From positions 206,212,001 to 206,276,000 of the forward strand of contig NC_042997.1 of assembly GCF_006345805.1 (NCBI RefSeq): a stretch of 64,000 bases of DNA, in the 5' to 3' direction. The position numbers and the translations under genes were made by a program. The stretch comes from Octopus sinensis. Lineage: Eukaryota. This document shows, piece by piece, positions 27,901 through 51,107 of this stretch. The first letter of the stretch is position 1, and each line of letters begins with the position of its first letter. The notes beneath the pieces are model-generated. The model made no database searches and was not told the origin of the DNA. It saw only the letters and a program-made list of their open reading frames with translations.

Positions 27901-28209
27901 GTATACACATATATATACATTATAACATATATATATACATATACATATTTATATATATACATACCCAATACATATAACCATATACAGATATTTATACATA
28001 TACATATATATACATATATATACATATACATAGATATATATATATACATATATATACTATTACATATAATATATTACATATTATATATACATATATATAT
28101 ATACATATACATATATACATATAAATATATATACATATACATATATACATATACATATATATACATATACATATATATATATATATACATACATACATAT
28201 GTATGTATA

Positions 28210-28915: not shown

Positions 28916-29539
28916 TTAAAGAAGGCAAGTAATAAAGGACGTTACCGTATACATTTTTACAAACCAAGGATTTGATATAGACCTCCTTGACTCAAGTTAG
29001 GGAAGGGGTGCGAGTTATACACAAGGTTTCATTTTTCAGAGGTACAGCCCCCTAAAAATCCCCTGCGTATTATACTGAAGGGTGGGCTATACACGAGGAT
29101 TTACGGTACATAGTGTGTGACTGACTGAGAGAGAGAGAGAGAGAGAGAGGGAGAGGTGTGTTGCAAGAGAGAGGATGTGTTTGACAGAGAGAAAGGGGGA
29201 GAGAGTGATAACGTAAATTTTTTTCCGAGAAAAACTAAATAAAAAAAAAAGGAAAATTTACTCATTCAGTCTCTCTCTCTCTCTCTCACACACACACAGC
29301 AACAGAAACCTGTCTGTCTGTCTGTCTCTTCGTCAATCATTCACACACTAAAAAAAGCATCGAGAAAACATAAATAAAATGTACGCTGTCACAAACACAC
29401 ACTTTGTTCCTCCTCCCCCATACGTTCATGTCTATTTCCTCTCCCTTTCACTTTTTGCTGACTTCAAAGAAAATGTCCATTTCCACCCATAAAATAAATA
29501 AATATAATTTTTTTTTTACGGAAATTAACGAACGCAGGA

Positions 29540-29875
29540 GTAAGTAGCGCGCCTACTAACCGCATGGTTCCGGGTTCAGTCCCACTACAGCCGCGGACCG
29601 ACCAAAGCCGTGTGAGTGGATTTGGTAGACGGAAACTGAAAGAAACCCGCGGTATATATGTATATGTTTGTGTGTCTATGTTTGTCCCCCTCTCCAACAT
29701 CGCTTCATAACCGATGCTGGTGTGTTTACGTCCCCGTAACCTAGCGGTTCCGCGAAAGAAACCGATAGAATAAATACTAGGCTTACAAAGAATAAGTCCT
29801 GGGATCGATTTGCTCGACTACAGGCGGTGCTCCAGCATGGCCGCAGTCAAATGACTGAAACAAGTAAAAGAGAAC
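29540..29875 (+). mobile_element. tRNA-derived SINE, type 2
   Basis: ggttcagtcccact head; tail gctccagcatggccgcagtcaaatgactgaaacaagtaaaag. Copies at 31705-31900 (-), 33340-33655 (+), 33680-33815 (-), 62525-62915 (-). Confidence 0.8.
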
Positions 29876-30734
29876 GCTGTACCTTAATAACTAATTGATT
29901 TTTGGGCGATCTTTCGTCTCTAGTAGACCTTTCCGTCGATTTCCGTGAAAAACTTCTTTTTTTTTTTACATATGGGCTTGCGAGAACTTTTGAAGTAATG
30001 AGAGCGAAAGAGACTAAGAGAAAGCGATTGTATGACGAGGGAAGTTCTTTTGAAGTTACCGTGCATGTGAAGCATTTATGTATATGTGTGTGTGTGTGTG
30101 TTTGATGGGGTGTGGGAGACAGAAAGTATGTTGTGTAAGTGAAGTGCTTCTGTTAGTGTGTGTGAAAGAAGGAGGTAACTGAAATTTTTTACTCGGTGTA
30201 TGTGTATATGTATATTAAATAAAAAAAAGTTTGTCTATATCTTCGGTCACTGTCATTATTCCATTGAGTCAACCTCATTATTTTCTACATAGCAGACCGT
30301 TACATAAACAGGCAGAGGTAATCTTTCGTTTTAACTCGAAATAATGTAAACACTGAATCGGCCATACATACACACATACATACACACACACATACATGCA
30401 TACATACATATACACATACACCGAGTAAAAAAATTCAGTTATCTCTCTCTTTCACACACACTAACAGAAGCACTTCACTTACACAACATACTGTCTGTCT
30501 CCCACACCCCATCAAACATCGTTCCGAAAGATTGCCAATTAGGCGATGGTAACAGCGGAGCCGCACGCACACACCTTCGAGCTTCGAGTCAAAATGAAAG
30601 ATTGCACCTTTTTTTATTTATTTTTTTTCCTGTTACCTTAAATTTCGATGTAGTCGTAATTCTACCCCATCTGAAAAGCATTCCTGGAAAATTGCAATAG
30701 AAAAATATATACATTTTTTCTGAGAGCTAAGTGA

Positions 30735-31158
30735 AAACAACCCCCCACCCTCCATCAGACACCTACCATATTCTGAGCGCCTTGTTTCCCTGGGCATGGA
30801 TTCACTGAAGCTCCGGCGTCTGGCGACGGACTTGGTAAACACCCACAAAGTTATCAACCACCTCACCAACAACAACACTGAATACCTTTTTGATCTCCAT
30901 GTGTCTAACACACGTGGACATGCCTACAAAGTCAGAAAACAACACAGCTCCCATAACTTTCGGAAACATTTTTTCACGCTCAGAGTTGCTGAAGCATGGA
31001 ATAAACTGCCTGCGTCAGTTGTTGACTGCCATAACACTGCATCCTTTAAGGCCCTCATGCTTTCCGAAATCCGCCGAAACTACACCTGATTATATATACA
31101 CTTTAGATGAGTTGTAGTGCACCTGAGCACTGTACACAATTATTATTATTATTATTAT
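30735..31158 (+). mobile_element. CR1-clade LINE 3' end with (ATT)n tail
   Basis: LPYSERLVSLGMDSL..RR..TRGH.YK..FFTLRVAEAWNKLP; same family as 46755-48050. Confidence 0.9.
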
Positions 31159-31263
31159 AATGTACTGAATAGCATGGAAAGCCACTTTGTAAAGTATTTG
31201 TAAAGTAATTGAGAGATAGAGGAGAAAGAAATTAAATTAGGAAGATACAATGTAAAAACTTAC

Positions 31264-31400
31264 CTCGTAACAACTCTAAGCAAAACTGTAATTTGAATAT
31301 TTATTCCATGGTTTTTAGGCCGATAATTAGTTAAATAGCAGCTTTATATGACATCAATGTTTTTCCAAGAAAACTCCCCTCCGTAACCCTTCTCTCATTC
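31264..31400 (-). other. Putative non-coding first exon (5'UTR) of the minus-strand PARP gene
   Basis: Ends CAGTTTTGCTTAGAGTTGTTACGAG|gtaagt. Homologous over ~170 bp to the plus-strand unit ending at 44111. The 5' boundary is approximate. Confidence 0.55.
31363..31371. promoter_or_regulatory. GAS (STAT-type) palindrome TTCCAAGAA
   Basis: Aligns to the GAS at 44007-44015; the spacer differs while the half-sites are kept. Confidence 0.4.
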
Positions 31401-31538
31401 ATACAATTCACTCCTACGAAAAATTTGCAATAAAAGTTTATAACTTTTTACAACACACGACACGAAGGACACTTTACAAAAGAAAAAAACCGGCAATTGT
31501 TTTAACAGGAAATACAGGCGAATGTAGGTTAGAGAAAA

Positions 31539-31548
31539 TTTCACTTTC
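31539..31548. promoter_or_regulatory. IRF-type element TTTCACTTTC (GAAAGTGAAA)
   Basis: Lies about 150 bp upstream of the putative minus-strand first exon. Confidence 0.35.
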
Positions 31549-31904
31549 ATTTTTGTCGTTCACCTCGGTAAAATTTATCTGGTTCTGTTTTAAGCCACAA
31601 TCCGTCAGTGTGTGCACTCGCACGCTCACACTTTTTGGCGTGTTTTTTCTATTAACCTTCACACACGTACGTATATACATATTTTTTTAACTTTCTATAT
31701 ATACCCTTTTATTCTCTTAATTGTCTCAGGCATTTGACTGTGGCCATGCTGGAGCACCGCCTTTGTCGAGAAAATCGACCCCAGGGATTATTCTTTGTAA
31801 GCCTACTATTCGATTGGTTTCTTTTGCCGAACCGCTGCATACAGGACGTAAGCACACCAACATCGTTTGTGAAGCTATGGAGGGAGGACAAACACAGACA
31901 CACA

Positions 31905-31946
<42 letters not shown>

Positions 31947-32519
31947 AAGAATTCACAAAACAAAAACAAAAGACGAAGACAGGTGGTGTAGATAACAAAC
32001 AGTTGTATTAGTATAACAAATATATACGTGTATATATATATCAACAATCGAGGAACGGCCATAATAGGCCATTCACCCACTAGAAATAACAGCCAAAGCT
32101 TCAACCGCAAAATAACATTAATTCCGCAAACCAGGAGAAAATTAAAAAACATTTACCCTGTAATTTCTTATACGATGCACCGTTTCATCTACTGTTTAAT
32201 GGTAAACTAACCTGATTAAATTAAATCAAGCCAATCTTCCATAGGCCCTTAGATTCGTCAGTAAGAAATAGCCAGATCGGAACAGATATTTTCACGAGGC
32301 ATTTCTGTCCCTGCCTCGGCAATATCTGACCTAAAATTTTCAAATCATCGCACTCGCCGCCAAATTTATCGGCAGCAAATAAATATAAGCCGCCGATTCC
32401 ATTACGGAATCAACCAGAAAATTCATAATTAATCAATATAGGGTGGCAAAAAATTTTGTAGAATTTTTTTGCCACCAGCGTGTATATATATATATATATA
32501 TAGTATAACAAATATATAC

Positions 32520-32566
<47 letters not shown>

Positions 32567-32839
32567 TATATATATATATATAATATATATATATACGTAT
32601 GTGTGTGTGTGCATATATATATATGTATAAGGCGAGCTGGCGGGCGAAATGCGTAGCCATATTTCGTCTGCCATTACATTCTGGGTTCAAATTCCGTCGA
32701 GGTCGACTTTGCCTTTCAGCCTTTCGGGGTCGATAAATTAAGTATCAGTTACGTACTGGGGTCGATGTAATCGACTTAATCCCTTTGTCTGTCCTTGTTT
32801 AGCCCCTTGTGGGTAGTAAAGAAATATATATATATCATC

Positions 32840-33320
32840 ATCATCATTAACGTCCGCTTTCCATGCTAGCATGGGTTGGACGGTTCAACTGGGGTCTGGG
32901 AAGCCAGAAGGCTGCACCAGGCCAGTCAGATCTGGCAGTGTTTCTACAGCTGGATGCCCTTCCTAACGCCAACCACTCCGAGAGTGTAGTGGGTGGTTTT
33001 ATGTGCCACTGACACAGGTGCCAGACGAGGCTGGCGAACGGCCACGCTCGGATGGTGTTTTTTATGTGCCACCAACACAGGTGCCAGACGAGGTTGGCGA
33101 ACGGCCTCGCTCGGATGGTGTTTTTATGTGCCACCGACACAGGTGCCAGACGAGGCTGGCGAACGGCCACGATTGGATGGTGTTTGTTACGTGCCCACAG
33201 CACGGAGGCCAGTCGATGCAGTACTGGCTACGGCCACATTCGGATGGTTTTCTTATGTGCCACCGGCACCACAAAGATACAAATTCCATTGATGTTCATC
33301 GATTTTGATTTGGTTTGATT
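32840..33320 (-). mobile_element. RTE family A 3'UTR with an expanded ~62-bp repeat array
   Basis: (CAT)n, then aacgtccgctttccatgctagc, then ~5 repeat units. Confidence 0.85.
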
Positions 33321-34284
33321 TTCATATATATATATATAGCTTGCTTACCAACCACATGGTTCCGGGATCAGTCCCACTGCATGGCATCTTGGGCAAGTGT
33401 CTTCAACTATAGCCTCGGGCCGACCAAAGTGAATTTGGTAGACGGAAACTGAAAGAAGCCTGTCGTATATATGTATATATGTATCTGTGTGTCTGTGTTT
33501 GTCCCTCCACCATCGCTTGACAACTGATGTTGGTGTGTTCACGTACCTGTAACTTAGTGGTTTGGCAAAAGAGACCAATAGAATAAGTACTGGGGTCAAT
33601 TTGTTTGACTAAAGGTGGTGCTTCAGCATGGCCACAGTCAAATGACTGAAATATAGAAAAAAAAGAAAGTAAAAGAATATATATACGACAGGCTTCTCTC
33701 AGTTTCCATCAACCAAATCCACTCACAAGGCTTTGGTCAGCCTGAGGCTATATAATAGAAGACACTTGCCCAAGGTGCCATGCAGTGGGACTGAACCCAG
33801 AACCATGTGGTTGGTAATTTAGATCTGTTTTTCACATCAAGTCACCATTTTAGATGATCTGTTTGTATCATGGTTGTGGAGCCATCTAAATATGACTCTA
33901 TTCAGAAGGACGTAATATCCTTTGATAGGAACACAGTAAAAAGAATACATAAAACAAATCTGTAACTTTAAATGCCTTTAATGTTGGCAACACGTATATA
34001 TGCAAGCTGAATGATAAATGCAAATGGTTTGATACATAGGGGCCACGATCTGCCTCCTGTGCATTGCCTCCTGTGTGCTAGTCGCTATGTGTTGTGACAG
34101 AGAGCCAACTAGTTTATATCTTTATGGTCTGATGTCTTGATAAGAAAAGAGAAAGTTGCAAGGCCTCATGTCAGAATCTCACTGCTGCTTGCGCCATCTA
34201 GCTGAGCTTGTTTTAACCTGCTGTCGAGGGAGGTAACTGTGCCTACAGTAAGCAAGCTGCTTACCATAAAGACACTCCTGCACC

Positions 34285-34315
<31 letters not shown>

Positions 34316-34551
34316 TAATAAATATTAGGGAATAAATCCAAATTTACAGGGAAAAATCAGATTTAGGATTGAATCCAATTTTATAGTAAAATATTATATA
34401 ATATTAATTAGAGACAAAACCACTATTTTGCAAATCAAACAAAGAAAGACTTAATCCAATACATAAAAAATTTTTTATGTATTGGATTAAGTCTTTCTTT
34501 GTTGATTTGCAAAATAGTGGTTTTGTCTCTAATTAATATATATATATATCT

Positions 34552-34583
<32 letters not shown>

Positions 34584-34601
34584 ATATATATATATATATA
34601 T

Positions 34602-37600
34602 ACATGGTTGGATCGTCGGCGACTAAACTGACAACCCCACCAGGCTCGCTTGGTGAGGAGGGTGCTGTTGGACACACTGTGGGATGAAAAATAAGACCCA
34701 TCAAAGCGCAGATGAACTCCTGAACAGTCAACAGCCATCCAACAAGATGCCGGCCTGCCCGCCCAGCCAGTGGGATGGCGTCATCTTATGGCTAAAACAG
34801 CACAAAGAATGAAGAGAAAAGAAAAAGGGCCTCAGTACCCTGCATGTCAATTGGGCCACTCCATGACTGTGGAGTGCAACCCAAGCGACAAGAGGCTGCT
34901 AAGAATCACAGGTTCCCAAGGGCCGTCATGGAACAGGACTAACCTTGCCATATGCATTTACAACTGCAGGTCCGTGGCAGGGTGGCAAGAACTGAACCAC
35001 CTAATGGAGGAGAGGAAGAAGATCAGGTGCAACGTGTTAGGGCTGTGAAAGACATTTTGGAAGAAGGAAGCGAGTATACGATGGCAAGATGGAAGCACTG
35101 TGAGATTAGGGAGAGCAGAAGGTACTAGATCGGTCGGAGGTATCGGATTCATCATAAGTAGAGAATGGGCTTCGGGGGTCGCTTCTTGCCAGTTCATATC
35201 ATCACGGATTGGTGTACTGAATCTGAACTTTTCAGGGAAGGCCACCCTCAAGATTGTTCAGACCTATGCTTCCACAAGTACCAGCGACGACGACAAGGTG
35301 GAAGAATTCTATCGACAGCTAGACAAAGGGCTGGCTGTGAAGTCCACTTACACTGTTGTGATGGGAGACTTCAACGCAAAGGTTGGACATGGACAACAAG
35401 GGGAGGAGTACGTCAAGAGATTCGGCATAGGAGAGAGAAACAAGAGGGGAGAACATTTTGCTACCATGGCAGAGGCGAGGCGGCTCTACATCGGAAACAG
35501 CCTATTCAAGAAGAGGGAGAAGAGATGGACCTGGATATCGCCGAACTCTAAGCACTGAAGTGAGATCAACTACATCCTGGTTGATAAGCGATGCATATTA
35601 CATGACGTCTCCGTCGTGACGCCATTCAACACTGGCAGTGATCATCGTCTGGTGAGGGCGAGGGTCATCATAAACAGGAAGAGGGAGAAGATGGCGCTGT
35701 ATTTGGCGTCGAAGGGAAAACTTGTCCGAGTCTACAACGAGGTAAAGCTGCAGGAAAACTGGTGCCAAGGAGATGACATAGACGATGACTACAACTCACT
35801 GATAGGGAAACTGAATGAGTGTTTCAGGAAGGCTAAAGGAGTATGTCTAAGAGAGAAGAAGGGAAGAATCTTGGAAGAAACTACGAAGTTACTTGAGAAG
35901 AGGAAACATGAAGAGGACTATTGATGATCACCTTGAATATTCCCTTCTCAGCAGAGTGATTCGTCAGCAACTAAAGAAAGACTTTGAGGTATACCAGATA
36001 GAGAAGCTCTTGAAGGCCGCAGAGGAAAAGAAGAGCCTCAAGAAATGCAAGAGGAACATGGTACTATATAGATCGGAAGTGATGGCCCTGAAAAATACAG
36101 ATGGAATACCAGTCAACGATAAGAGTGAGATGGAAAATGTTTGCGAAGACTTCTACATCAAGCTCTTTAAGTCTACCAGAAATGTCCAGCCATTACCACC
36201 ACTCCAACAGGAAGAAAATGTGCCACCTATCCTTGTCAGTGAGGCTGAAAGAGCTATCGGCTTGATGAAAAATGGAAAGGCGCCAGGGAAAGACGGTATA
36301 ACATCGGAGGTGATAAAGTCAGGCAGAGAGCAGCTCTGGAAAATCCTCGCTGAGCGATTGACGCACTATCTAGATGAAGGAAGAACTCCCTCGCAGTGGA
36401 AAGAGTCAAATACCATCCTGCTGTATAAGAAGGGCGACAGAGAAGATCTAAAGAACTACCGACCCATTTGCCTGCTGTCTCACGTGTACAAGCTGTTCAC
36501 AAAGGTAATTCTGAACAGGTTGTCACGTCATCTCGAGACAAACAACAACCGAGGGAGCAAGCCAGCTTCCAGAAGAACCACAGCACAATGGACCATATAT
36601 TTACTCTAACACAACTGCTTGAGTGAGCGAATGAGTACAAGCTGCCTCTTTGCGTTGCATTTGTAGACTATGAGAAGGCCTTCGACAGTGTCGAAACCAA
36701 TGCAGTGCTGAACTCACTGCAGAGGCAAGGAGTTGAGGTGCAATATGTGCAACTGCTCAGGGAAGCAAATTCCGGATGCACCACCAACATAGCTCTGCTG
36801 TCATCACCCGTAAAAGTGCTGGTCGAGAAGGGAGTGAAGCAAGGAGATACAATCTCCCCAAAACTTTTCACCGCATGTCTCAAGCTGATCATCAGAGGCA
36901 TCGACTGGCAAGGTGGTGTCAACATCAATGGCGAGCTCCTCACCCACCTCTGTTTCGCTGATGACATCGTACTCATCGTTGAAACCATGGATCAGCTTCA
37001 GACCATGCTGACGGAGCTCGACATCAAAAGTTTTGCAGTAGGTCTCCAGATGAACCGCATGAAAATGAAGTTCATGCGGCCAGACAACGTACTGACAGGT
37101 CAAATGGTGATCGGCAGTGATGAAATAGAGGAGGTGAGGGAATATGTCTACCTGGGACAGGAAGTAAATATGTGCCGGGATATCAAAAAGGAGATCTCAC
37201 GGAGAGTAAGGGCTGGATGGAAGGCGTTCAATGGCATAAGGGATGTGCTGAAGGGAAGGTTGGACAGGACCACCCATGCCAACCTCATCAACAGCACAGT
37301 TTTTCCTGCAATGTTATATGGTAGTGAAACATGGGCTACCACAAAGAGAGAAGAGCAGAGACTGGTAACGGCTAAAAGAGCCATGGAAAGGGCAATGCTT
37401 GGAATCTCATTGAGAGAGCACATCAGTAGCGAGGTCATCAGAAAGAAGTCCAGCATGAGGGATGTCATAGCAGAGTATACATGCAGCAAGTTTAGATGGG
37501 CTGGACACGTTGCCCGGCTCACCGATAATCAGTGGACCCGCGCAGTTGTCGAGTGGTATCCGCGCGAGCGGAAACGACCACCCGGAAGGCCTTCACAACA

Positions 37601-37729
37601 GTGGAGTTACGATTTCAGGAGGACAATTGGGATCATGTGGATGAGAAAGGCACGATCTAGAGAGGAGTGGACAGCGTGCTGTGACCAGCAGTGTCAAATA
37701 GACGCCTGACGGACTGGTCGGTCAAGGTG

Positions 37730-37731
<2 letters not shown>
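34602..37731 (+). mobile_element. Near full-length RTE-clade LINE (family B) within a (TA)n tract
   Basis: 5'UTR, APE (VVMGDFNAKVG), RT (NYRPICLL, VDYEKAFDSV, GVKQGD, FADDI); a few stops/frameshifts; (TA)n on both sides. Confidence 0.93.
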
Positions 37732-37768
<37 letters not shown>

Positions 37769-37869
37769 ATATATATATATATATATATAAGATATATATA
37801 TATATATATAAAGATATATATATATATAAAGATATATAGATATATATACACGCACACACACACGCATAT

Positions 37870-40800
37870 ATATAACGAGGTCATTGCCAGTGCCGCTGGA
37901 CTGGCTCCTATGTAGGTGGCACATAAATACACCATTTGAGCATGGCTGTTGCCACTACCGCCTGACTGGTCCTTGTGCCGGTGGCATGTAAAAGCACCCA
38001 CTACACTCTCGAAGTGGTTGGTGTTAGGAAGGGCATCCAGCTGTAGAAACTCTGCCAGATCAGACTGGAGCCGGGATGCAGGGTCGCTCTTGAATACAAA
38101 GACCCTCCTGGGTGAAGAGTGTATCCCTCAGCATAGGCTAATCATTAGTGACTTTAGGCTTGAGGCCAGAAGGACTCCAAAAAGCAGACCAATCCAGAAA
38201 AGAAGGATTTGAAAGCTAAAGAACCCTTCACATGGTCAGAGATTTAGGGACATCCTCATCAAGAAATTTGATGAGAGGGAGGAGGAGCTACAGACGTTGG
38301 ACATAGAAGGTAGCTGGAAATTCCTACAGCACAGCTTGCTGAGTGCCACATACCAAGTCTGTGGATGGTGCAAAGTCCCTTCCAGACCTAGAGTTACGTG
38401 GTGGTGGAATAGTGCAGTAGACAAAGCCATTAGTGCAAAGAAACAGGCCTGGAGAGCCTGGAGGTAGCAGGGAACCGTACCAAGTAGCCAAAATGGAGGC
38501 CGGGCGGCAGGTATACATAGCCAAAGATATAGCGTTAGGAAGGGCATCCAGCTGTAGAAACATTGCCAGATTAGACTGGAGCCTGGTGCAGCCTTCTGGC
38601 TTCCCAGAACCCCGGTCGAACCGTCCAACCCATGCTAGCATGGAGAACGGACGTTAAACGACGATGATGATGATGATGATAGCAGAAAAGAAGAAATTTG
38701 CCAATGTCCAGCGACGTGAGGACCAAAGAACTGAGGTATTTCAGATTGCTAGACAGTGTGTGAGAGAAAATAGTGATGTTACAGGAGAGAAATGTGTCCG
38801 CCTGGATGATGGGGCACTTGCTTTTAATGTTGGTGAAAAGAAAGAGGCTTGGAGAAGCCATTATGAAAGACTGCTGAATGTGGAGAATGAATGGGAGGAG
38901 GAGAGCCTGCCAAATGTTGACCCAGTAGAGGGACCAGCTATCCAAATAGACAGCTCCCTTGTAGTTAAGGCAATTAAGGGTATGAAACCAGGTAAAGCCC
39001 CCGGCCCATCAGGTATCACTGCTAAGATGCTTAAAACAGCTGGTTATGTGGGCTATGGCCTAGTCACCCGCATTGTAAACCAGGTAGTTCATAATGGAGT
39101 CATACCCAATGACTGGCATAGCAGCACCATAGTCTACTGCTACAAGGGTAAGGGTGATGCTCTAGATAGAAATAACTACAGGGGTATTAAACTGTTGGAT
39201 CAGGTGATGAAGGTCACAGAGAGGGTCATAACCCATCTCATTAGGGAGAGAATTTGCTTAGATGAGATGCAGTTCGGTTTTGTAGAAGCACCACTGATGC
39301 TATATTCCTGGTCCGACAACTGCAGGAGAAGTACCTAGCTAAAGATAAACCCCTCTAAATAGCTTTTGTGGACTTGGAGAAAGCCTTTGACAGAGTTCCC
39401 CGATCCCTTATCTGGTGGTCGATGCGGAAACTGGAGATTGACGAATGGCTAATAAGGGCTGTACAGGCTCTATACAGAGAGGCTGTCAGCAAGGTTAGGA
39501 TTGGCAACGAATATAGTGAAGAATTCCAGGTAGAAGTAGGTGTACACCAAGGCTCAGCCCTCAGTCCCCTTTTATTCATCATAGTCCTCCAGGCAATAAC
39601 AGAGGAATTCAAAACAGGTTGCCCCTGGGAGCTCCTCTATGCCGATGACCTGGCTCTCATAGCAGAATCACTACCGGAACTAGAAAAGAAATTTTGGGTG
39701 TGGAAACAAGGGTTAGAATCAAAGGGCCTTAGAGTAAATGTAGCGAAGACCAAAGTTATAGTAAGCAGAAAGGCGAACTCAGCACACACCCCATCGGGCA
39801 GGTGGCCATGCTCGATCTGTAGGAAAGGTGTAGGTAGAAACTCCATAAAATGCACCCAGTGTAAGCTATGGACGCATAAGAGGTGCAGCAACATCAAAGG
39901 GAAATTAACTGATAAGATAGCTTTCATGTGCGGCAGATGTACAGGGACAATAGACACCACAAATACTCAGAAAATAGATTCCATCACACTCCAGGGGGAG
40001 AAACTAGAAGTAGTTGATAGTTTCTGCTACCTGGGTGACCAAGTTAGTAGTGGAGGTGGATGCTCAGAGAGTGTCACCATTAGAATACGAATAGCCTGGG
40101 CAAAGTTTACAAAGCTCCTACCCCTACTGGGGACAAAGGGTCTCTCACTCAGAGTGAAAGGTAGATTGTATGATGCATGTATGCGAACTGCCATGCTTCA
40201 CGGCAGTGAAACATGGGCCATGACTGCTGAGGACATACGTAGACTTGAAAGAAATGAAGCTAGCATGATCCGCTGAATGTGTAATGTCAGTGTGAATGCA
40301 CAACAGTGTGTAAGCACCCTGAGAGAAATGCTGGATATAAGAAACATCAGATGCGGTGTGCAAGAGTGACGCTTGCGATGGTATGGTCATGCACTGCGGA
40401 TGGATGAGGAGAGATGTGTGAAGAAGTGCCGCTCCTAAACAGTTGAAGGAATCAGGGGGAGAGGTAGACCCAGGAAGACATGGGATGAGGTAGTCAAGCA
40501 TGACCTCAGAGCGTCGGGCCTCACTGAGGCAATGGTCAAGGACCGAGATCTCTGGAGATGTGCTGTGACTACAAAGACCTGGGATGCTTCCGGCTCCAGT
40601 TCCGCATAGCCCCTGCCCATTCAAAATACCTTGGATCCTGGAACGTCTCGCTGTGCTTGAGGAGACCTGTTGAGTCAAGTGCATGTACACGAACATCTAA
40701 ACAAATATCAATGGAAATAGTAGTTGTGATACCTGTGTCGGTGGCACGTTAAAAGCACCATCCAAACGTGGCCGATGCCAGCGCCGCCTTGGCTGGCTTC

Positions 40801-40987
40801 AGTGCTGGTGGCACATTAAAAGCGCCAACCGATCGTGGCCGATGTCAGACCCCCCTGGCACCTGTGCAGGTGGCACATAAAAAGCACCCACTACACTCGC
40901 GGAGTGGTTGGCGTTAGGAAGGGCATCCAGCTATAGAAACACTGCCAGATCAGAGTGGAGCCTGGTGTAGCCCTGGCTTCCCAGACC
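37870..40987 (+). mobile_element. Composite RTE family A block; last copy lacks its terminal ~60 bp
   Basis: 302-aa RT segment at 39368-40276; 3'UTR stops at ccagacc, abutting the macrodomain exon. Confidence 0.88.
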
Positions 40988-41181
40988 ACAAAGTAAACAT
41001 GTTTGATCTGGCTTGAATTTTGATCTGAGTAGTTTTTCACTGCTTCATACATTGTTCTGGGTAGTTTTTCAATGGGGTACTTCATTTCAGCCCCTAATAT
41101 AGGAAATGCAAGGCTTTTTGCTCCCATTCTCTCAGCTTCTTCCAGACAAATGGTTATTATTTGAGTCAAGTTTGCCAGAAT
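40984..41181 (-). CDS. Macrodomain C-terminal exon (PARP14/15-like), 3' end replaced by RTE 3'UTR
   Basis: ttttttattag|ATT (phase 0). ILANLTQIITICLEEAERMGAKSLAFPILGAEMKYPIEKLPRTMYEAVKNYSDQNSSQIKHVYFVV, SLAFP-type macro motif. No consensus donor; the frame runs into repeat sequence to TAG at 40891-40893. Confidence 0.85.
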
Positions 41182-41792
41182 CTAATAAAAAATAATTGTT
41201 TAGTAATTGATAATGAACATTTTATTAAATTATTTTCTTATTACAGGAAGAAACCATTAAGTTGTAATAAATATATCCTCCTCTCACAACTCCTCTCACT
41301 CCTACCACTTCTAAACACAACTGTCATTCCTATCACTCTTTAGTCCTGCAAGGGACAAGGCAACCTCACTCATGATGCTGCTACAATAAAACAGACCCAA
41401 TCCACCATGTAAAATGGTTGGTGAATGAAGAGAGACAATGCAGACCCAAGAGGAGTCTTTAGTGTTGTTGAGGACATGACAACCTCTCTAGTGCTCGTGC
41501 CATGACAGAGAAAAACTCACCAATACAGACAGTAAAACAGAGAAATATGTTTTAATATAGTCTTATTTATCAGTCACATAACTGTTGTTAGGCCATGAGG
41601 CTTTTTTCCTTCTATTTATATATAAAAGTGTCCTGTTCATCGATATCTTCTGCTTCCTTCCAATGATAACTTGGAAGAACAAATATTAAACAGGATGCTG
41701 TCATTTGCTTTATGATTCTCACACAACATGCATAAGGTTCTCTTCAAACATTAACTGTTTCAATAAGTCAATATAATATGATTGATACTTAC

Positions 41793-42025
41793 TGAATCAG
41801 AGGAATTTTCATCCCAGGGAGGTAATGCCAGATGAAATACATTCTTACAGTTGAGGTTATATCCTTTAGTGACTGCAATTTCAGATGTAGAAATACCTTG
41901 AGGATATTTCTGGTTACATTCATCTTGTATCTCTGAACCAGCAGCAAAGAGAATATATTTGGAGATAGAACCATCATTAAGCTGGAGTTCTGGACCAGAA
42001 ATGGATGAGCTTGATGTTGTGGTTT
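41793..42025 (-). CDS. Macrodomain exon (PARP14/15-like)
   Basis: ttttcag|AA ... TCA|gtaagt; 233 nt, phase 1 to 0. TTTSSSSISGPELQLNDGSISKYILFAAGSEIQDECNQKYPQGISTSEIAVTKGYNLNCKNVFHLALPPWDENSSDS; joins the 41181 exon in frame. Confidence 0.88.
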
Positions 42026-42065
42026 CTGAAAATAAACAAATATCAGTGTGTGTATGTGTATAGAT

Positions 42066-42120
<55 letters not shown>

Positions 42121-43968
42121 AACATCATCATTACCCCCCATGATGATATAACGTCCATATTCCATCCAGGTCCAAGTTGAACAAAATGATATATAAAGAC
42201 ACATCCGTCACAGCAAAAGTCATGTCCAAAAACTGGTATTTATATTCCTGTCCATGGTGGGCTCTACGCCCACATTTGCCCCTGTGAAGCAGTTCCTTTA
42301 CCATATCTCATCTTCCTAACACCCATCCCTCCATTACTCTTCTAACTACGGTCCTACTTTGCTGCTGTAACCATTAGAGAGCAGAATCTGCACATATTCA
42401 TCACCACCCCCGCCCTTTTCTAACCCCCACCCTAATCCTAACCCTAACCCCAACTACAAAAATTTTTGGAAAATTGTTTCAGAATCATAATCTCTGTATT
42501 TTTCCACATATTTTGAAAAAAAAAAAATTCTGAAAAAAATGAAGAATTTAGCAAGGGGAAGTAATTTCAAAATGCTGATTTATGCCAATTTTTTTGGCAC
42601 ATTCGTATTTTCCATCGCTGAAAACGCTGGAACTGGAGGTGTCTTGTGTGGTCAGTGGTCAGACCTTAAAAAGTCTGGAACCGAATAACATCAAGTTGAG
42701 GAAAAGTTAGGTTTGTAGGCTCAGCTGAAGTAGAAAAACAGGCTGTCACACGTGACCTTATTTGAAGGCTGTGATTTGTTGGGTTGTATATTGGTGCATG
42801 CTAGAGTAAGAGACAAATTGCACCAATAGCAACCAATCAGAGTAGTGGATACAACAGGGTCCAAAATGCAGCCAAAGACTAGCTGTTATCTACTATGTTT
42901 GTATGTATATATAATAGAGAGGAGAGGAATTTCACTCAAGTGTACGCTGCACCTCTATAATTTAAAAAATATTTTTCTGGAAAAAAATGAAATAACTCTA
43001 ACAATTCAGTTTGGGCAGGTGTATTATTGTGCTAATGTCAGAGTAACCAGTGAACATCGAAGGATTAACGTCAAGAAGGAAGGAATATTATTTATATATA
43101 TTTATTTGTTTGCCTGACAGGTAATTAGAGGACAGAAAAATTGCTGTCTGCTAGTAGAGAGGGAAAGAATAAGAAATGCACGGTGCCGGATAAAGGTGGT
43201 TCTGTTCCGATTGGCTATTTCCAAATGAGTTCATTAGTGGGGTCTGGAACTCTGGTGGGGAAAAAAAGTTTTATGCCCCAGACCTCTCATGGTTTAAATC
43301 TGATCTTGTCTGTGCGCGTCTACTACAGAGATACAGGGTAATAGAATGTAGATAGATAGAAAGGGTAAGGTTTGTGTTATTGTGCCTGATACACCATACT
43401 TGAAATGAGAAAAAGAGAGGCCCTTTGGATAAGTGCCCACTGACCAAAGAGAAGGAAACCTGATTTGATTGAATATACATGTATATTAATCCTAACCAAA
43501 TTATGTTAAACTATACAAAAGATTTTTACTCTGTATCATGTTTTGACTCCTGAATGCCTCGAAAAGGTCTGAGAGGTTACTATACTCTCACCAATTTCCT
43601 AGTGGAACAGGGGAGAACAATAGGTAGAGGACTTGTAGGAAAATGTAGATTCAGCTTCGAATTCTAGCTTAGAAAGTTGGTAGGTATCTACCACATATGT
43701 ATATGTATGTGTGTATATATATGTGCGTGCGTATGTGTATCCACAATCTAAAGGTTTTGTGAAAACTATGCTGAACAGTACCACCAATAGAAAAAAAACA
43801 AACTGATAAATTCTACCAAGGTGATTGACAAGACTGAAGGTGAAATCTTCTCTAGCCTACTACATTCACCTGTATTTCCTAATTAAACTATTACTGGTTT
43901 TTCTCTGCTTTTAAAGTTTTACTTTTCAAAATAAACTCTTATCGCAAATTTCTCAGAAACGTAAATTG

Positions 43969-44015
43969 TATAAAAGAGAGTGAAGTTGTGGTGGTGGGAA
44001 GAGTTTTTCTCGGAA
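43969..44015 (+). promoter_or_regulatory. TATA box and GAS (STAT-type) palindrome TTCTCGGAA
   Basis: TATAAAA 43969-43975; TTCTCGGAA 44007-44015. TTCNNNGAA is kept in the paralogous copy. Confidence 0.45.
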
Positions 44016-44111
44016 AAACTGGTGACATACAAAGTTGTTTAACCAATCGACGACTTACAAAAGCCATCGAATTAATATCAAAGTTTCAGTTTTGCTCAGA
44101 GTTGTTGCTAG
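44000..44111 (+). other. Putative non-coding first exon of a plus-strand gene (probable paralogue)
   Basis: TATAAAA at 43969-43975; ends CAGTTTTGCTCAGAGTTGTTGCTAG|gtaagt. Inverted homologue of 31264-31433. Confidence 0.55.
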
Positions 44112-45150
44112 GTAAGTTTTCACTTCCTCCATCTCTCCATTGCTTTACAAATTCTTTACAGAGTCGCATTCAATATTTTTCACTCCGTTATAACTACACA
44201 AATTTGTCTTCTTGTAACTCTCAGGACGTATACATATATATATATACACGAGTGAGTGGACAAACGAAAGAGGGGCACTCAATCATATTATTGGGAATAA
44301 CACGTGCGTGTGTGATAAAGAGGCCCGAAAATCTGATGATCATGTGTTGGTTGAAGTTATCAGACGTAACTGATAATGATAATGATGATTCTTGCAGAGT
44401 ATGTCTTCTTGTTGAAAAGTGTGTAACCCAAAATACGAAGTTTCAAACAACATGATTCATTTTCGTTACATTTACAATTATAAATCAACCACGTCGTATC
44501 GTTGAAGATCAACATATAATTTTAACTGTTGTGCATTTGTTGACAATCTACTTTAGTCTTTTGGAATTACTAGTGAGGGAAAGGGTGTGTGTGACAGATA
44601 TGATAGAAAGGGCAATCTGTAAATGTGGTAGGCATGATAATTAGATTAATTAATATCGGTGTAAAACAAACGACCGGGGAAGAAAGGAGAGATGCTTACA
44701 ATAGTTTTCGTTTGAGTCACTGACATCGTTTCTCGTTCAACCCCAAAACTGTCTGCAATCTTTCAATGAAAGATATCCATATTCCTAAAAGTTATGAGGA
44801 AAAAAGTGGTAACGTGTAAATCTTTCGAAACCCCTCCCCCTTGGGAAAATTCTTTCCAATAAATACCTATTTACTCGGAATCTACAGCATATAAGCGGTA
44901 TTTGTTGGAAATTTTGTTAAAATACATCCATATTTCTAGAAGTTAGGAGACGGGTAGGGCACAAATCTGTAGTTAGGCCATCATAAATACGCATACATAC
45001 ATAAATATACGTATTATGCTTTCACGATTCGCTTCTGTTTATGTGCATGTATGGGTGGATGGTTGGGTGGGTTTGCACCAAGGGTTCTATGTGTAAGCTG
45101 AAGAACAAAGTGAAGAAATGAGAATGTTTAACGGAACTTACCGAACAAGT

Positions 45151-45163
45151 AGTTTCACTTTCC
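45151..45163. promoter_or_regulatory. Consensus ISRE AGTTTCACTTTCC
   Basis: Exact match to AGTTTCNNTTTCC in apparently unique sequence ~1 kb from the 44111 exon. Confidence 0.4.
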
Positions 45164-46754
45164 TGAAAACATCTCTGAAGGATTGCCGTAAAGTTTGAAA
45201 TGGTCTTTTTTTTTTTTCGTAGTGAAATCAGAATAATTTATAATCGAAAAGGTGGAAGTTATTTATCCATAATTCTCAAATTAGTTTCCTATTAATTGAG
45301 GCCGCGGATCTTTTCGGTTTGAACGGCAGTTTTTAACATAATTTCTAGGTAACTAAAAAATTTTAAACTTCGTATACTGGTAGAATGTGTTTATAAAACA
45401 TCTTTTTCTCTTGGCTTTGTGGTGAAAATTCTATGGTTTGTAAGATATTTGTTTTTTTTTTTCAATTCTTTCAATTTCAACCAATCAATGACGTCTATTG
45501 AGGTAAAAAAAACACACATTCTGTGCCGTATGAATATATCTCTCGTTTAAGAAACAGATTGGGTTTATTTACATATTTGAAGAAAAAAAGATACCCTTCC
45601 CCCCACCCCTAACCCTAAAACAGATTGAAATGCAATAGATCGATACTAGGGTCATAATTATGGGTGACAATTTCATATGACACCGCTAGTAAAAACCGAA
45701 AAGATCTGAGGCCGCTTTAGTTAAAGGTTACTCTATAATGTTTGCAGGTCAATGCATTTCTACGTTACGTCATTTTCTTTTGACAGCCATTCATTCTCTC
45801 AGTTTTCTTTCTTTCCCTTTATCTTTTTGGGGTGGGGCTGTAATTTGACAAACGGTTTTTTTTTAATGTTTTCTCTCTCTCTCTGTTCTATTTATACCTT
45901 TCTTTCCTGCATTCTGTCTCTCTCTTCCTCGTTCTTCTGGTTTGCTAAGTGTGTTCCTTCTCCAAACTTTATTTCCTTGTAACTTTCCGAGAAATGCATA
46001 TTTTGTAATGAAATTTTCTTCAAATTTCTTTCAGAATGTGTAGATTACAACTATATAGCGGTTTACCAAGTTTTTCTTGTGTAGTATAGCGAATATTTTC
46101 TGGTTGGTTTGTTTACTGATAGTGTAAGGCTACTTTATTATGTTTCCTATTTGGAAATAGATAAATATATTTAGCTTTTTTAAGTTGGGATATATAATGA
46201 TAAAACCGTCACTTATAACTTAAGTCTTATCGGATCTTTTTACTTTGACCGGCAGATTTTAAAAATAATTTCTTTGTAACTAAACACTTTTAAACTTCGT
46301 ATACTGGTAGAATGTGTCGCAAAAAACATCTTTTTCTCTTGGCTTTCTTAAGAAAATTCTGTATTTTGTAAGCTATTTCTTGTATTTCGGCAATTTCAAC
46401 CAATCAATGACGTCTATTGAGGTGAATTTTTTTTCTTCAGAAATGTAAATAAGCTGCAAATATAAACATTTTGTGGCCATAAAATGAGGGGTCACTCGTA
46501 AAAAGAGCTGGATAACAAAACCGTTCACTCATTAAGTGTCCACCCATAATTATGATCCTAGTATCGATCTCGAAATAGACATAATTATGGGTGGACACTA
46601 AATGAGGGAACGGTTTTGTTATCCAGCTCTGTTTACGACTGACCCCTCTGTTTATGGCTACAAAATGTTTATATTTGCAGCTTATTTACATTTCTGAAGT
46701 AAAATAAAAGATACCCTTCCCCCCACCCCTGACCCTAACCCTAACCCCACATAT

Positions 46755-48050
46755 AATAATAATAATAATAAAACATTGTGTACGGTGCTCAGGTGCACCA
46801 CAACTCATCTAAAGTGTATGTATAGTACATAGGGCAATGTACAAGCGTCAGGAAAAGAACAGTGCATGAGTCATGACATACACATGTGTATGAGTATGGA
46901 AGGGGGACAATCAGGTGTAGTTTCGGCGGATTTCGGAAAGCATGAGGGCCTTAAAGGATGCAGCATCATGGCAGTCAACAACTGACGCAGGCAGTTTATT
47001 CCATGCTTCAGCAACTCTGAGCGTGAAAAAATGTTTCCGAAAGTCATGGGAGCTGTGCTGTTTTCTGACTTTGTAGGCATGTCCACGTGTGTTGGACACA
47101 TGGAGATCAAAAAGGTGTTCAGTGTTGTTGTTGGTGAGGTGGTTGATAACTTTGTGGGTGTTTACCAAGTCCATCGCCAGACGCCAGATCTTCAGTGAAT
47201 CCATGCCCAGGGAAACAAGGCGCCCAGAGTATGGTAGGTGTCTGATGGAGGGTATGCGTTTGGTTGCACGTCTCTGAACAGATTCCAGGAGGTCAATGTT
47301 CTGAGCAAGATAGGGGTTCCAAACTGATGTTGTGAATTCCAAGTGTGGTCGTACCATAGCTGTATACAGTTTTAAATAGATGGCTGGAGAGCGGCTAACA
47401 AAAGTCTTGCTGAGTGATGCCAAGACACCCTCGGCCTTCTTGACAATTTTAAAGATACGCTTTGTCCAACACAAATCACTGCTGACAGTGATGCCTAGGT
47501 AACGCTCACAAGAGGATTTCTTGATATCAGTGTTGTGGAGGGAGTATGTGGACGCAGGGTTTTTTCTCCCAAAATGCATGGTGGTACACTTGTCCACAGC
47601 CAGTTTCAATTGCCAGTCTGTGATCCATTGCTGCATTGTGTCCAGGTCTTATTGCAGGAAAGAGCTGTAGACAAGAGGATCTGTCCTCTTGATTTCAAGG
47701 TACAGCTTGATGTCATCTGCATATTTTAATACTGTGGAATTCTTTAAATTTGCATCTATGTCATTAATGTATGCCACAAACAAGAAGGGACCAAGAACAG
47801 ATCCCTGTGGTACACCCGATGACATCTCATATGGTGTAGAATGCTGTCCTAGAACTGTGACTACCTCCTTTCGGCTGAGAATGAAGGATTTCAACCAGTT
47901 AAAAAGATCATCCCTCACACCCATTGCAGAGAGTTTCACCATAAGCCTTTTGTGTGGCACAGAATTAAAAGCCTTAGCAAAGTCAAGGTAGACAACATCC
48001 ACCCATGAGCCTCTGTCAGTGATCTGAGTAATGTCCTCAATATATAAAAA
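46755..48050 (-). mobile_element. CR1-clade LINE, 5'-truncated
   Basis: VVYLDFAKAF, GVPQGSVLGP, KYADDIKL, VRPHLEF; (TTA)n tail. Confidence 0.92.
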
Positions 48051-50687
48051 AATTAAAATTTTACGGCAAGTGACGATCTTCTTCAAATCTGAACAAATAC
48101 ACGTACCACTGGAAGTTGTTCTTGAACTTGTTGCAAGCAACAGCAGTAATTGTATTCACCTCAATAGATAAATATATTTAGCTTTTTAAGGAGGGATATA
48201 TAATGATAAAACCGTCACTTATAAGTGTTATCATTATAAGTAAATCCTAACTCCAGCTACATAAACGCCATAGCAAGAAATATATTTTCTGAAAGGCTAA
48301 CAAACATTCTATGCGTGCATGTATGTTAAATATTAATTACTTCGTGTTCTTTTAACTGCTATAAAAAAAAAATACAGTTTCATAATTATAGAAATACATT
48401 CATTATTAAGTTGAAGAATGTGAAGAAAGAGAAAATAATTTCTACATTATTTTATTATATACATATAGCATTTTTAATATTTATAAACATTTTGAAACAT
48501 AGTAATTTTGTTGTAGAGAATTACGACCTAATATTTTAGCTATCTAATTCCTCATTCTAGCTATTATAAATCTCAACAATTCAAACAAGTCTTGTTAGAT
48601 TTTTCATGGACATGGCATAAAAAATAACCAATGTCTCAAAGGAATGAGTGTCGTGGAGTTTAGTTACATCCAACCAACACTGAAGTTTTTCCCAAAATCC
48701 AGGGTTTTTATAACTGCTCAACTTGACTTTAAAGAATCGAAATCGCATACAAATATTCTTAGAATTCCTGTATAAGCAGTTATATTAACCAATGGAAAAA
48801 CATATTTCTTCGGCAATATGACATTACATCATATTGCCAGCTACCACAAATTGGTGCTACTATTTGAAAATGGCTACACGCTACAACTATATCAGAATTT
48901 GAAAAAATATATGGTAGGCACACATGTATAAATGGGGGTAGGTTGGAAAGTTAGTAACCAGGGCAAAATGAGTAACTTCTGATTTCTCATTATTTTCTTC
49001 CTCCCTGTGTGAAATCCCTTACTTTGTAAGCATTGCATCACCATTTTGTATTGCTACATTATACTTGAGGATAAAAACTGGTTGTTGCTGTTGAAGTTGT
49101 GGAAGTACAAAGCATAGTCAAGGGGCAGGTCCCCTTTTTTTTTTGTCAAGAAATTTCTCTTCAACTGTGACCCAATTGTAATTGAGGTTGCTAATAAAAT
49201 ATCTGGATAATTTTTCATGCTAAACAATATTGATTTCTCTGCTGGATTCCAAGTCAATTTTTCCCCACACTAATGTCTAATTTGATAATCTTCAAGTTTC
49301 CCAAAAGTTACAACGAGTAATGACTAATTTCAGTAATTTCTTCTCTTTAACTGCATGGTGGGTAAATGTATCACGAACAGAACATTCCAGCAGATCGTGA
49401 AGAAGAAGAAGAATATTTTATGTTGGGTTTTCTTATATTTAGTCTAATTTCATTAATTTCATATCCTGTGCCATTTTTTCCCTGATCCTCTTTCATTTGA
49501 TTTAGATTTTAAATGTTATTCTTTTGGCATGTCTGAATGTTTCTGATGTTTTCGGATGGATATTAATGTGTACGAGTCTGTTTTCTGAAGAACTGAAGCA
49601 GCACATAGTACCTTGTCTTACTCATTTTGTGGCAGCCTTTCATTTTCCAAATGAAATACAATTGGTGAAATTGAAACCAGAACTTTTGGCATTGTACAAC
49701 AGAAAGAACACCGATTTTTCCGTAAGTTGTAAGATAGTTGTATTTACAAAACATGTAAAACATCTGAATGAGGTTTATCAAGTGTATGCACAGGAAAATA
49801 AGTTGTCTAAATCTAATTTTAATGTAAATGTTTGTCTTTAATAATATGTTGCCTTTTAGAGTTTCATTACGAGAGAGAGGGGGGGAGGGGGAGAGACACT
49901 GTGTGTGTGTGTGTGTGTTGTAAGTTGGTTGATCAAAGCAGTAAGAGAGAATGTCTATTCATGTTATATGCACAAAGATTGGTAAAACAACCTCAAGCAC
50001 AGTCAACTTACTCCTAATTAAATTCAACTTTGAAGATTCTTTATGTAAAGCATTGGTAAGGCATCAAAGAATGGCTTGTTGAGAATTTGCTGAGCCTTGT
50101 TGATTGGCCAGTTGTAATCCAAAAGTTGCACATTAATCTGTTAAAAAACGAAACGAAAAAAGCAGCAGATTTTGGTTTCTTTGCTTTCCACATTTTAGCA
50201 GGAGTCACGGTGACTGGCATTGTGACAGGAGTACCACAACCCCAACGAAGCTATTGACCAATCACCATTGCCGTATTATGTGGTTCAAGACCAAGGTGTT
50301 GTGGGCAGAAAACACACTGGGAAAAGACTGTCCAACTACTGCACATCTTTCTCTGAACCTACTGCACACATATGCAGACTTCACTTGCTGATGGTAGACA
50401 CACTGCAGACTCACTTGCATTTTGAGCAAAATCATACAGAGCCCTTTGTCTTCACATTCCATGACAATACCTCTTACCAGCTTAAAAACTGGACAGTGTT
50501 TTTGCTTGCTGTCAACCATTGTCAACTGGTAAACATTTTGATCTTATAAACACAGGCATTTGTGCATTCATTTTCTATCACACGTTTGGCTAACACGTTA
50601 TTCAGATGACTTTGTTAAATGTGAAAATATCTTTTGTACATTCTCACAAACACATGTAAACCTTATTACCTTGCACAATGTGGTCAA

Positions 50688-51072: not shown

Positions 51073-51107
51073 AGCAAAAATACCCGTTGAAATCATGGCG
51101 GAGAAAG
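51073..51107 (+). CDS. Putative start-codon micro-exon (ATG 51095; MAEK, phase-1 donor)
   Basis: Long pyrimidine tract, then tttcatttccag|AGCAAAAATACCCGTTGAAATC ATG GCG GAG AAA G|gtattt. Good Kozak context (A at -3, G at +4). The product cannot be identified from four residues. Confidence 0.5.

Follow-up and report, generated by a model that had tools for sequence, protein, structure and literature searches.

The question raised by this locus is whether the genes for macro-domain PARPs in a mollusc are wired to an interferon-like regulatory system. The locus is a 64,000-nucleotide stretch of the Octopus sinensis genome (GCA_006345805.1, CM016859.1:206,212,001-206,276,000; the window below), in which an earlier note had listed seven motifs of the STAT-type gamma-activated site (GAS) and of the interferon-stimulated response element (ISRE) or IRF kind around PARP promoters, and had proposed that they may form an interferon-like regulon. 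Work on bivalves suggests that molluscs, in which no interferon is recognisable, nevertheless mount a transcriptional response of the interferon kind. Its DNA control elements are largely undefined, and cephalopods have barely been studied in this regard; we know of no interferon in this group. All seven motifs are present within one base of the positions given for them, and the regulon finding as a whole is partly supported by our analysis. Its GAS half holds up moderately on sequence comparison and centers on a near-palindromic element, GAS1, in a duplicated 5' module of PARP14-like genes. This octopus palindrome is a newly predicted, computationally defined GAS-type element which has the sequence expected of one and is partly supported as such.

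The DNA scanned comprises 554,428 bp of octopus sequence, namely the window and nine other loci, among them the locus of the macro-only paralog P0002 (L002) and including the 10-kb upstream flanks of P0003, P0004, P0005, P0008, P0009, P0016, P0019 and Argonauta P0011. GAS denotes the palindromic TTCN3GAA core and TTCYNRGAA its STAT5-type variant, which is the sequence preferred by STAT5. ISRE and IRF elements (IRF-E) were recognised by the consensus (A/G)NGAAANNGAAACT or by tandem GAAA repeats.

A palindrome conserved among three copies of a 5' module

GAS1 lies in a module of ~400 bp that is present three times in the scanned DNA. Copy 1 (minus strand) and copy 2 (plus strand) are both in the window as inverted duplicates, for which BLAST gives 68.6% identity and the core of the MAFFT alignment 74.6%, and the third copy is at L002 (coordinates in Table 1). 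Three-way homology spans ~360 bp with a pairwise identity of 73-76%, and a search of the 554 kb with an nhmmer profile and with fuzzy blocks found no module beyond these three copies. All conservation data used below come from these paralogous copies, which are mutually related and ~25% diverged. The alignments show that the modules are two old duplicates plus a third upstream of P0002, and that they belong to one subfamily of the expanded PARP14-like genes.

Read in the sense of transcription, the module consists of a second GAS (GAS2), a TATA-like box, GAS1 (TTTTCTnGGAAAAAC), a cyclic AMP response element/ATF-like TGATGTCAT that in copy 2 reads TGGTGACAT, a non-coding exon of ~100 nt, and a strong GT donor. 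The exon-end block is TTTTGCTCAGAGTTGTT.C.AG/GTAAGTTTT (slash, splice junction), with the copy-2 donor at 44112, after which ~125 bp of intron are conserved; between TGATGTCAT and this block there are ~60 nt of weaker conservation. AG/GTAAGTTTT is invariant in the three copies and the surrounding 31-mer is found solely at the three modules. That neither the donor nor the exon-end block varies favors a genuine non-coding first exon that is spliced, and in copy 2 a conserved ATG exon (51073-51107) follows 7 kb downstream. The upstream TATAAAAG may act as a TATA box. An open reading frame (ORF) that runs across GAS1 (43988-44455) was considered as coding sequence and rejected since 2-, 6- and 8-bp indels between the copies break the frame.

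The earlier note had placed a GAS at the aligned position of both diverged window copies. BLAST and MAFFT confirm this, with the GAS1 cores of copies 1 and 2 in the same alignment column, and the L002 copy keeps GAS1 as well. Specifically, TTTTCTnGGAAAAAC is invariant in the three copies save for its central base (T, C and G), so that 14 of the 15 columns of the GAS1 block are invariant relative to 52% overall, making this block the joint top 15-mer together with the exon end. When the extended GAS1 pattern is considered, all 12 of its 12 positions are invariant, which occurs in just two of 319 windows, the other window being the exon end. GAS1 is also the sole 3+3 gapped palindrome common to all module copies, and, outside the splice sequences, this STAT-type palindrome is better conserved than any other element of the module. 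The conserved donor follows it at 100-108 bp, and the TATA-like box precedes it by 29-38 bp.

Two further sites accompany GAS1. GAS2 of copy 2 is matched at the aligned position by TTCTTGGAA in L002 (7477), and the GAS pattern of an intron 1 site, GAS3, is kept in L002 within an intron block that is ~67% identical. Note that this block, which is shared with L002, is split in the window by the insertion at 45305-45707, so that 45220-45305 and 45707-45996 together align to 10405-10811.

Local clustering of STAT-type sites

The frequency of GAS sites was analyzed at two scales. Across the window there are 28 TTCNNNGAA sites versus 21.6 +/- 4.6 in dinucleotide shuffles, with 28 or more being reached in six of 100 shuffles. 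The motifs of the earlier note span an interval of 14.6 kb. This interval contains seven GAS, or 0.48/kb relative to a window mean of 0.44/kb, so the density equals background, and the idea of a single cluster is not supported; most of the sequence from 31.6 to 43.8 kb is debris of long interspersed nuclear elements (LINEs) plus a relic macro-domain gene fragment. Retention of six defined bases in two copies is itself expected in ~17% of cases at ~75% identity.

Enrichment over background was not found for GAS window-wide, whereas local clustering was found for the TTCYNRGAA variant. All five module GAS (31363, 43950 and 44007; 7477 and 7524 in L002) fit this variant, whose background rate is 0.10/kb, and the site at 45985 also has the TTCN3GAA core. 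Two or more TTCYNRGAA sites per 520 bp occur at three places only in the 554 kb, two of which are modules, and three or more per 2.26 kb occur solely at 29151-31461 and 43751-46161. Composition-matched shuffles of these 5' regions gave P = 0.002-0.005 for the GAS clustering. A similar picture is given by the 13-mer TTTTCTNGGAAAA, which has five matches in 554,428 bp. Three of these are the GAS1 sites, and the other two, at L002:7475 (GAS2) and at window position 29233, are non-homologous to GAS1 and each is less than 2.2 kb from a module. The sole other place with two strong GAS and a strict ISRE is at about 35.1 kb of locus L006 (34851-35571), which we rejected as a chance cluster since a very abundant LINE has its edge there.

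The match near 29233 belongs to an extra palindrome downstream of copy 1 (Table 1). A 17-mer, AGTTTTTCTCGGAAAAA, is identical at 29223-29239 on the minus strand and at 44003-44019 on the plus strand with dissimilar flanks, which indicates either convergence or micro-duplication of the palindrome.

A possible STAT-responsive module and its alternatives

The constraint on GAS1 together with its satellite sites appears, from these comparisons, to be a real but modest local signal. Our preferred reading, to which we give a probability of about 0.42, is that GAS1 with GAS2 and the intron sites are predicted STAT sites that would confer infection-inducible JAK-STAT control. In this mechanism an octopus STAT of the STAT5-like type would bind GAS1, aided by GAS2 and by the additional TTCYNRGAA sites that intron 1 carries within its first 2 kb. 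This would place the module genes under cytokine/JAK-STAT control with induction during infection, and the outcome would be an invertebrate analogue of the STAT-driven induction of vertebrate PARP9 and PARP14. The ISRE/IRF-like motifs would be unnecessary for such a model. A broader version, which we think unlikely as it stands, is that the expanded cephalopod PARP14-like genes (macro, WWE, PARP) are wired directly to a STAT5-like factor via the predicted promoter palindrome TTTTCTNGGAAAA, that the STAT-to-macro-PARP antiviral link is older than interferons and survives in a mollusc, and that the 13-mer is the signature of an octopus regulon resembling interferon-stimulated genes (ISGs).

Published expression data place pathogen responsiveness at the level of the PARP14-like family only. 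In coccidian-infected hemocytes of O. vulgaris a PARP14-like transcript (Locus_28_Transcript_19/20) rises from 158 to 1245 fragments per kilobase per million reads, which is 7.85-fold (q=0.017); a second PARP14-like transcript decreases (PMC4199593 Table S2). In Amphioctopus fangsiao, expression of a gene annotated as STAT5B is raised 6 h after poly I:C (PMC11252417). Molluscs possess JAK, STAT and SOCS (PMC9334734, PMC5869526), and PARP14 is among the antiviral differentially expressed genes of oyster (PMC12803857).

Several observations weigh against STAT control of the module. The induced O. vulgaris transcript is from a different paralog, whose protein is 60-63% identical to those family members with which it was compared. 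Seven other paralog loci of O. sinensis or O. bimaculoides were sampled and none has the module; these include L003 and L010, in which the M-A-E-K coding exon found behind copy 2 is present and the full 10 kb upstream was covered. From this sampling the module marks one subfamily and not the whole PARP14-like expansion, and a family-wide regulon is not supported. Copy 1 lacks GAS2, the TATA box, the exon IRF-like motif and a P0002-type gene body behind it; it may be a dead relic, or the WWE-PARP gene of the window (P0007) may have taken it over. If the TATA box is used, GAS1 would occupy about +1 to +15. Activator sites are not usually found there, and the position would suit a core-promoter or 5' untranslated region (5'UTR) element or a repressor equally well. 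GGAAAA is compatible with NFAT/Rel or ETS factors too. The extended GAS1 motif was defined post hoc, after inspection of the data, and for the bare core an invariance of 6/6 is reached by 6% of windows, as expected by neutrality alone. Finally, the intron is conserved as well as the upstream part of the module (0.62 versus 0.53 invariant columns).

These last figures also speak for a rather unlikely alternative in which a chance GAS in an AT-rich ancestral promoter was kept by descent, with the duplications too young for decay and with no dedicated factor. This would fit with an identity that leaves 52-63% of the columns invariant, with one intron block at 13 of 15 invariant columns, with a window-wide GAS density not above shuffles, and with the accidental combination of a GAS pair and a strict ISRE at the L006 LINE edge. 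Descent would not, however, readily account for an extended block equalled by the exon end alone, nor for the single variable column being exactly the degenerate center of the palindrome. The extra non-homologous 13-mers solely beside the modules, and the uniqueness of the TTCYNRGAA clusters to these two 5' regions, are likewise difficult to reconcile with it.

The STAT reading must also be weighed against the improbable case of a real cis element with a non-STAT reader, such as NFAT/NF-kB (GGAAAA), ETS (GGAA) or a core-promoter/5'UTR element. All five TTTTCTNGGAAAA matches have one orientation relative to transcription, which a symmetric dimer site need not have, although with only three independent events this shared orientation is not significant. 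The palindrome is also imperfect (TTCT versus TTCC), the conserved TATA would put the block at the start of the transcript as noted above, and NGGAAAAAC resembles the NFAT core. However, conservation covers the two half-sites together with their T/A flanks, the half-sites are separated by exactly the 3 nt that STAT sites have, and GAS2 and GAS3 retain TTC...GAA and not GGAAAA (TTCTCAGAA, TTCCGAGAA and TTCAGAGAA).

ISRE/IRF-like motifs

The ISRE/IRF half of the earlier proposal fails in that no IRF-type site is retained in all three module copies. Sites that conform to the consensus do exist (45151-45164, and GAAAGTGAAA at 31539-31548), with neither retention at homologous positions nor enrichment of the class. 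For example, the copy-2 position that corresponds to GAAAGTGAAA (43836-43845) reads GAAGGTGAAA, and L002 is non-homologous there. The counterpart of AGTTTCAGTTTTG is AGTTTCACTTTTG in L002 and AATTACAGTTTTG in copy 1, where the site is lost, and because AGTTTCAGTTTTG lies inside the splice-constrained exon-end block its conservation is not assignable to IRF binding. The post-donor GGAAGTGAAA is in copy 2 only, with a weaker AAAACGAAA in L002 and nothing in copy 1. The exact ISRE at 45151 is one of two strict matches in 554 kb; it is specific to copy 2 and lies in non-homologous intron sequence with no L002 counterpart, homology resuming only at about 45185-45220. None of the exact ISRE, the post-donor site and AGTTTCAGTTTT is kept in all copies.

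Counts of GAAANNGAAA in the three modules are 1, 0 and 0 at a background of 0.254/kb; by composition-matched shuffles the one site, in copy 1, is unexpected at a nominal P = 0.049. The degenerate AANNGAAA is ~2.5-fold denser in both 5' regions (14 versus ~5 expected). This enrichment was set aside as evidence for IRF since the motif is too degenerate, since five of the 14 copy-2 matches are inside a transposable element (TE) insert, and since similar windows exist elsewhere, with ~1% of all 2.3-kb windows reaching 13-14 sites. Overall, the most likely explanation of the ISRE/IRF-like motifs is that AT-rich DNA yields such matches by chance.

It is very improbable that IRF acting via the ISRE-like sites (31539, 44082, 44118 and 45151) co-drives the locus with STAT, as it does in vertebrate ISGs. 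Such a role would be congruent with the activation of ISRE reporters by an oyster IRF (PMC5869526). It would also be congruent with the rarity of the strict ISRE at 1 kb from exon 1, with the density of AANNGAAA, with the half-sites on both sides of the donor that are common to copy 2 and L002, and with an IRF2-like transcript in octopus hemocytes. To our knowledge ISGF3 (STAT2 + IRF9) is vertebrate-specific. The incomplete retention among the copies argues against IRF, in addition to which the donor-flanking half-sites overlap splice-constrained sequence and the AANNGAAA and GAAANNGAAA counts are compromised by the TE insert and by occurrence in one of three modules, respectively.

Relation to known systems

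The closest known counterpart is the promoters of vertebrate PARP9/DTX3L and PARP14, which carry GAS and ISRE/IRF sites used by STAT1 and IRF1. As in the octopus, these are macro-domain PARP genes with a STAT-type TTCNNNGAA near exon 1, and in both cases infection of immune cells is accompanied by induction of members of the family (PMC4199593 for octopus). In contrast, the octopus locus is without a conserved ISRE, one downstream gene is macro-only, and the sites are predicted ones. The octopus modules are moreover 12.6 kb apart and separated by TEs, and so do not form a shared bidirectional promoter, unlike vertebrate PARP9/DTX3L.

Targets of Drosophila STAT92E, for example Socs36E and infection-induced genes, resemble the octopus case in having clustered TTCNNNGAA within ~2 kb of the 5' end, with the same 3-nt spacing and T/A-rich flanks, in an invertebrate that also has a single or few STATs. 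The phylum and the target genes differ, and the octopus case rests on a comparison of three paralogs. The interferon-like system of oyster (cGAS/STING-TBK1-IRF, CgIFNLP and JAK/STAT) has PARP14-like genes as antiviral effectors with IRF and STAT both present (PMC8218723, PMC5869526, PMC12803857). However, the bivalve work is at the level of expression and protein with no PARP14-like promoter element defined, its prominent IRF/ISRE arm is unsupported at the octopus locus, and nothing comparable is described for cephalopods.

If GAS1 is a working STAT site, it would provide a mutable element and a 13-base search pattern with which JAK-STAT targeting could be tested and the regulon listed genome-wide, and it would lend weight to a STAT-to-macro-PARP link of ancient origin. 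Should it be non-functional, the locus is a caution that GAS and ISRE look-alikes, exact ISREs included, arise by chance in AT-rich, TE-laden invertebrate DNA.

Table 1. Features of the window and of locus L002 referred to in the text. Positions are those of the window unless L002 is named.
Feature	Position	Strand	Remarks
Module copy 2	43793-44193	+	Upstream part, TATA-like box, putative non-coding exon 1, donor and start of intron 1; BLAST versus copy 1 and L002; nhmmer 43917-44184, E=2e-72
Module copy 1	31155-31591	-	Stand-alone ~440-bp duplicate in reverse orientation; BLAST; nhmmer 31460-31164, E=4e-90
Third module copy	L002:7406-7751		2.3 kb upstream of annotated P0002 coding sequence (CDS) start, 13.6 kb upstream of its M-A-E-K exon
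GAS1, copy 2	44005-44017	+	Near-palindromic STAT-type TTTTCTCGGAAAA (also written TTTTCTCGGAAAAAC); core TTCTCGGAA at 44007-44015
GAS1, copy 1	31361-31373	-	TTTTCTTGGAAAA; core TTCCAAGAA at 31363-31371; alignment A1
GAS2, copy 2	43950-43958	+	TTCTCAGAA; 57 bp upstream of GAS1
Degenerate GAS2, copy 1	31412-31420	-	TTCGTAGGA, one mismatch; alignment A1
GAS3, intron 1	45985-45993	+	TTCCGAGAA; aligned L002 position 10800-10808 is TTCAGAGAA
Extra palindrome	29221-29233	-	TTTTCTCGGAAAA, sense orientation; 2.1 kb downstream of copy 1
TATA-like box	43969-43976	+	TATAAAAG; same in L002 7495-7502; degenerate TATGAATG in copy 1; block with 13/15 invariant columns
Putative non-coding exon 1, copy 2	44000-44111	+	Donor GT 44112-44113; start placed from the TATA position alone
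Putative exon 1 end, copy 1	31262-31293	-	Last exon base 31264, donor GT 31263-31262
IRF-E-like motif	31539-31548	-	TTTCACTTTC (reverse complement GAAAGTGAAA); ~170 bp upstream of copy-1 GAS1
IRF/ISRE-like motif	44082-44094	+	AGTTTCAGTTTTG; 3' end of putative exon 1
ETS/IRF composite-like motif	44118-44127	-	TTTCACTTCC (reverse complement GGAAGTGAAA); just 3' of donor
Exact ISRE	45151-45164	-	AGTTTCACTTTCCT / AGGAAAGTGAAACT; 1.04 kb into copy-2 intron 1
WWE-PARP gene P0007	6357-25754	-	tblastn 91-100% identity; Pfam PARP E=9e-20
Relic macro-domain exons	41990-41781 and 41181-40981	-	tblastn 74-89% to paralogs; Pfam Macro E=3e-16
First coding exon, plus-strand gene	51073-51107	+	ATG 51095, M-A-E-K; acceptor and donor read from sequence
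5'-truncated LINE	30731-31159	+	Reverse transcriptase C-terminus and tail; abuts copy-1 3' edge; 90-95% identical to 46752-47269 (-)
Two LINE fragments	35100-40276	+	Most of inter-module space; Pfam RVT_1 on ORFs 36705-37709 and 39368-40276; several repeat families
Dispersed-repeat insertion	45305-45707		Many copies in window, L005 and L010
LINE reverse-transcriptase copy	46752-48140	-	Antisense in intron 1 of plus-strand gene; Pfam RVT_1 E=3e-19

PARP14-like genes in and around the window

The identification of a mollusc PARP14-like locus is borne out by protein searches, in which the coding-looking exons of the window match only octopod PARP14/15-like proteins, and by Pfam matches to PARP and Macro. 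The macro, WWE and PARP domains that characterise the family are all found across the window, with no single window gene having all three intact. O. sinensis has at least 20 PARP14-like protein clusters, many on the same chromosome as the window, which indicates a lineage-specific expansion. The description of the two modules as PARP promoters stands insofar as they are paralogous 5' modules with a conserved donor. It does not stand for the genes behind them, as the copy-2 gene, judged by homology, encodes macro domains only and the link of copy 1 to P0007 is an unproven candidate. Downstream of copy 1 there is no homology to L002 intron 1 or to the ATG exon, with only matches to microsatellites and to a short interspersed nuclear element (SINE).

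P0007 (O. sinensis, 244 aa) has CDS exons on the minus strand at 25703-25548, 12268-12131, 11464-11270 and 6620-6357, which code for a partial WWE domain and the PARP catalytic domain. Its WWE exon (25754-25548) was recognised by tblastn to the WWE region of P0012, P0042 and P0043 (61-64%) and by reading of the sequence; Pfam gave PARP only for P0007, with no match to a WWE profile. A 100-N assembly gap at 25757-25856 interrupts this exon, and the P0007 model therefore begins at the first Met past the gap, which probably leaves its annotated protein truncated at the N-terminus. The order of the relic macro exons and the P0007 exons is that of P0043-type paralogs (macro, middle region, WWE, PARP) with the middle exons absent, and together they are probably a broken or rearranged ancestral gene. 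The relic exon at 41181-40981 is cut by a TE, its frame continuing into TE-derived sequence ('...HVYFVVW/EARATPGSTLIWQCFYS'), and there is no annotated gene at that place.

The plus-strand gene behind copy 2 corresponds to the macro-only paralog P0002, whose locus L002 is 800 kb away. Its first coding exon shares 98% identity with the exon that P0002 uses in L002, and this exon is found again in L003, L008 and L010. The body of the gene extends past 64000, with macro-domain exons expected just beyond the window end. From 49 kb to its end the window is 94-97% identical to L002 (49055-51523 and 58886-64000 versus L002 19351-33034), whereas the 5' module is only 69-76% identical between copies. 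This difference points to a mosaic history, with either a recent duplication or a gene conversion that may have spared the promoter. A second homolog search found no macro-macro ortholog in O. bimaculoides.

Alternative first exons and split gene models are also found in this family. Isoform X2 of P0002 has an alternative first coding exon at L002 9960-10008 (...ATGTGTAG/GTATGC), 2.4 kb 3' of the module, which has no counterpart in window copy 2. A 346-bp tandem duplicate at 60862-61507, 94% identical, encodes 'MLNE[PT]PMFPKVNY', the peptide with which the annotated paralog P0009 begins. This points to an alternative first exon of repeat origin in the PARP14-like family. At L009 1-9956 an RRM_PARP14 gene is immediately upstream of a macro-only model, and O. 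sinensis P0040 is overlapped on the opposite strand by a 2195-aa RRM-Macro-PARP gene. Given such split or overlapping models, many 'macro-only' or 'PARP-only' proteins may be annotation fragments.

Transposons and repeats around the modules

The window has a G+C content of ~40% and is crowded with LINE reverse-transcriptase fragments, octopus SINE, microsatellites and fold-back repeats; a scan of 28000-47000 against Rfam gave no match. The LINE sequences at 30731-31159 and 46752-48140 belong to one young family, and each lies antisense in a putative first intron just 3' of a module. These two insertions appear to be independent and recent.

Between copy 1 and the extra palindrome there is a copy of the abundant octopus SINE (29540-29872) and a fold-back repeat resembling a miniature inverted-repeat TE (30099-30213 / 30404-30518) whose arms are 95.7% complementary and which is also found near L008 and L010. 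The similarity of 29899-30518 to the 5' flanks of L008 and L010 was considered as gene homology and rejected, as it is due to this fold-back repeat. Lastly, a large intron of P0007 contains, at 22841-24761, a degenerate tandem repeat of ~130 nt in 10 copies with 60-72% identity, which yields long Arg/Glu/Lys-rich open frames on the minus strand.

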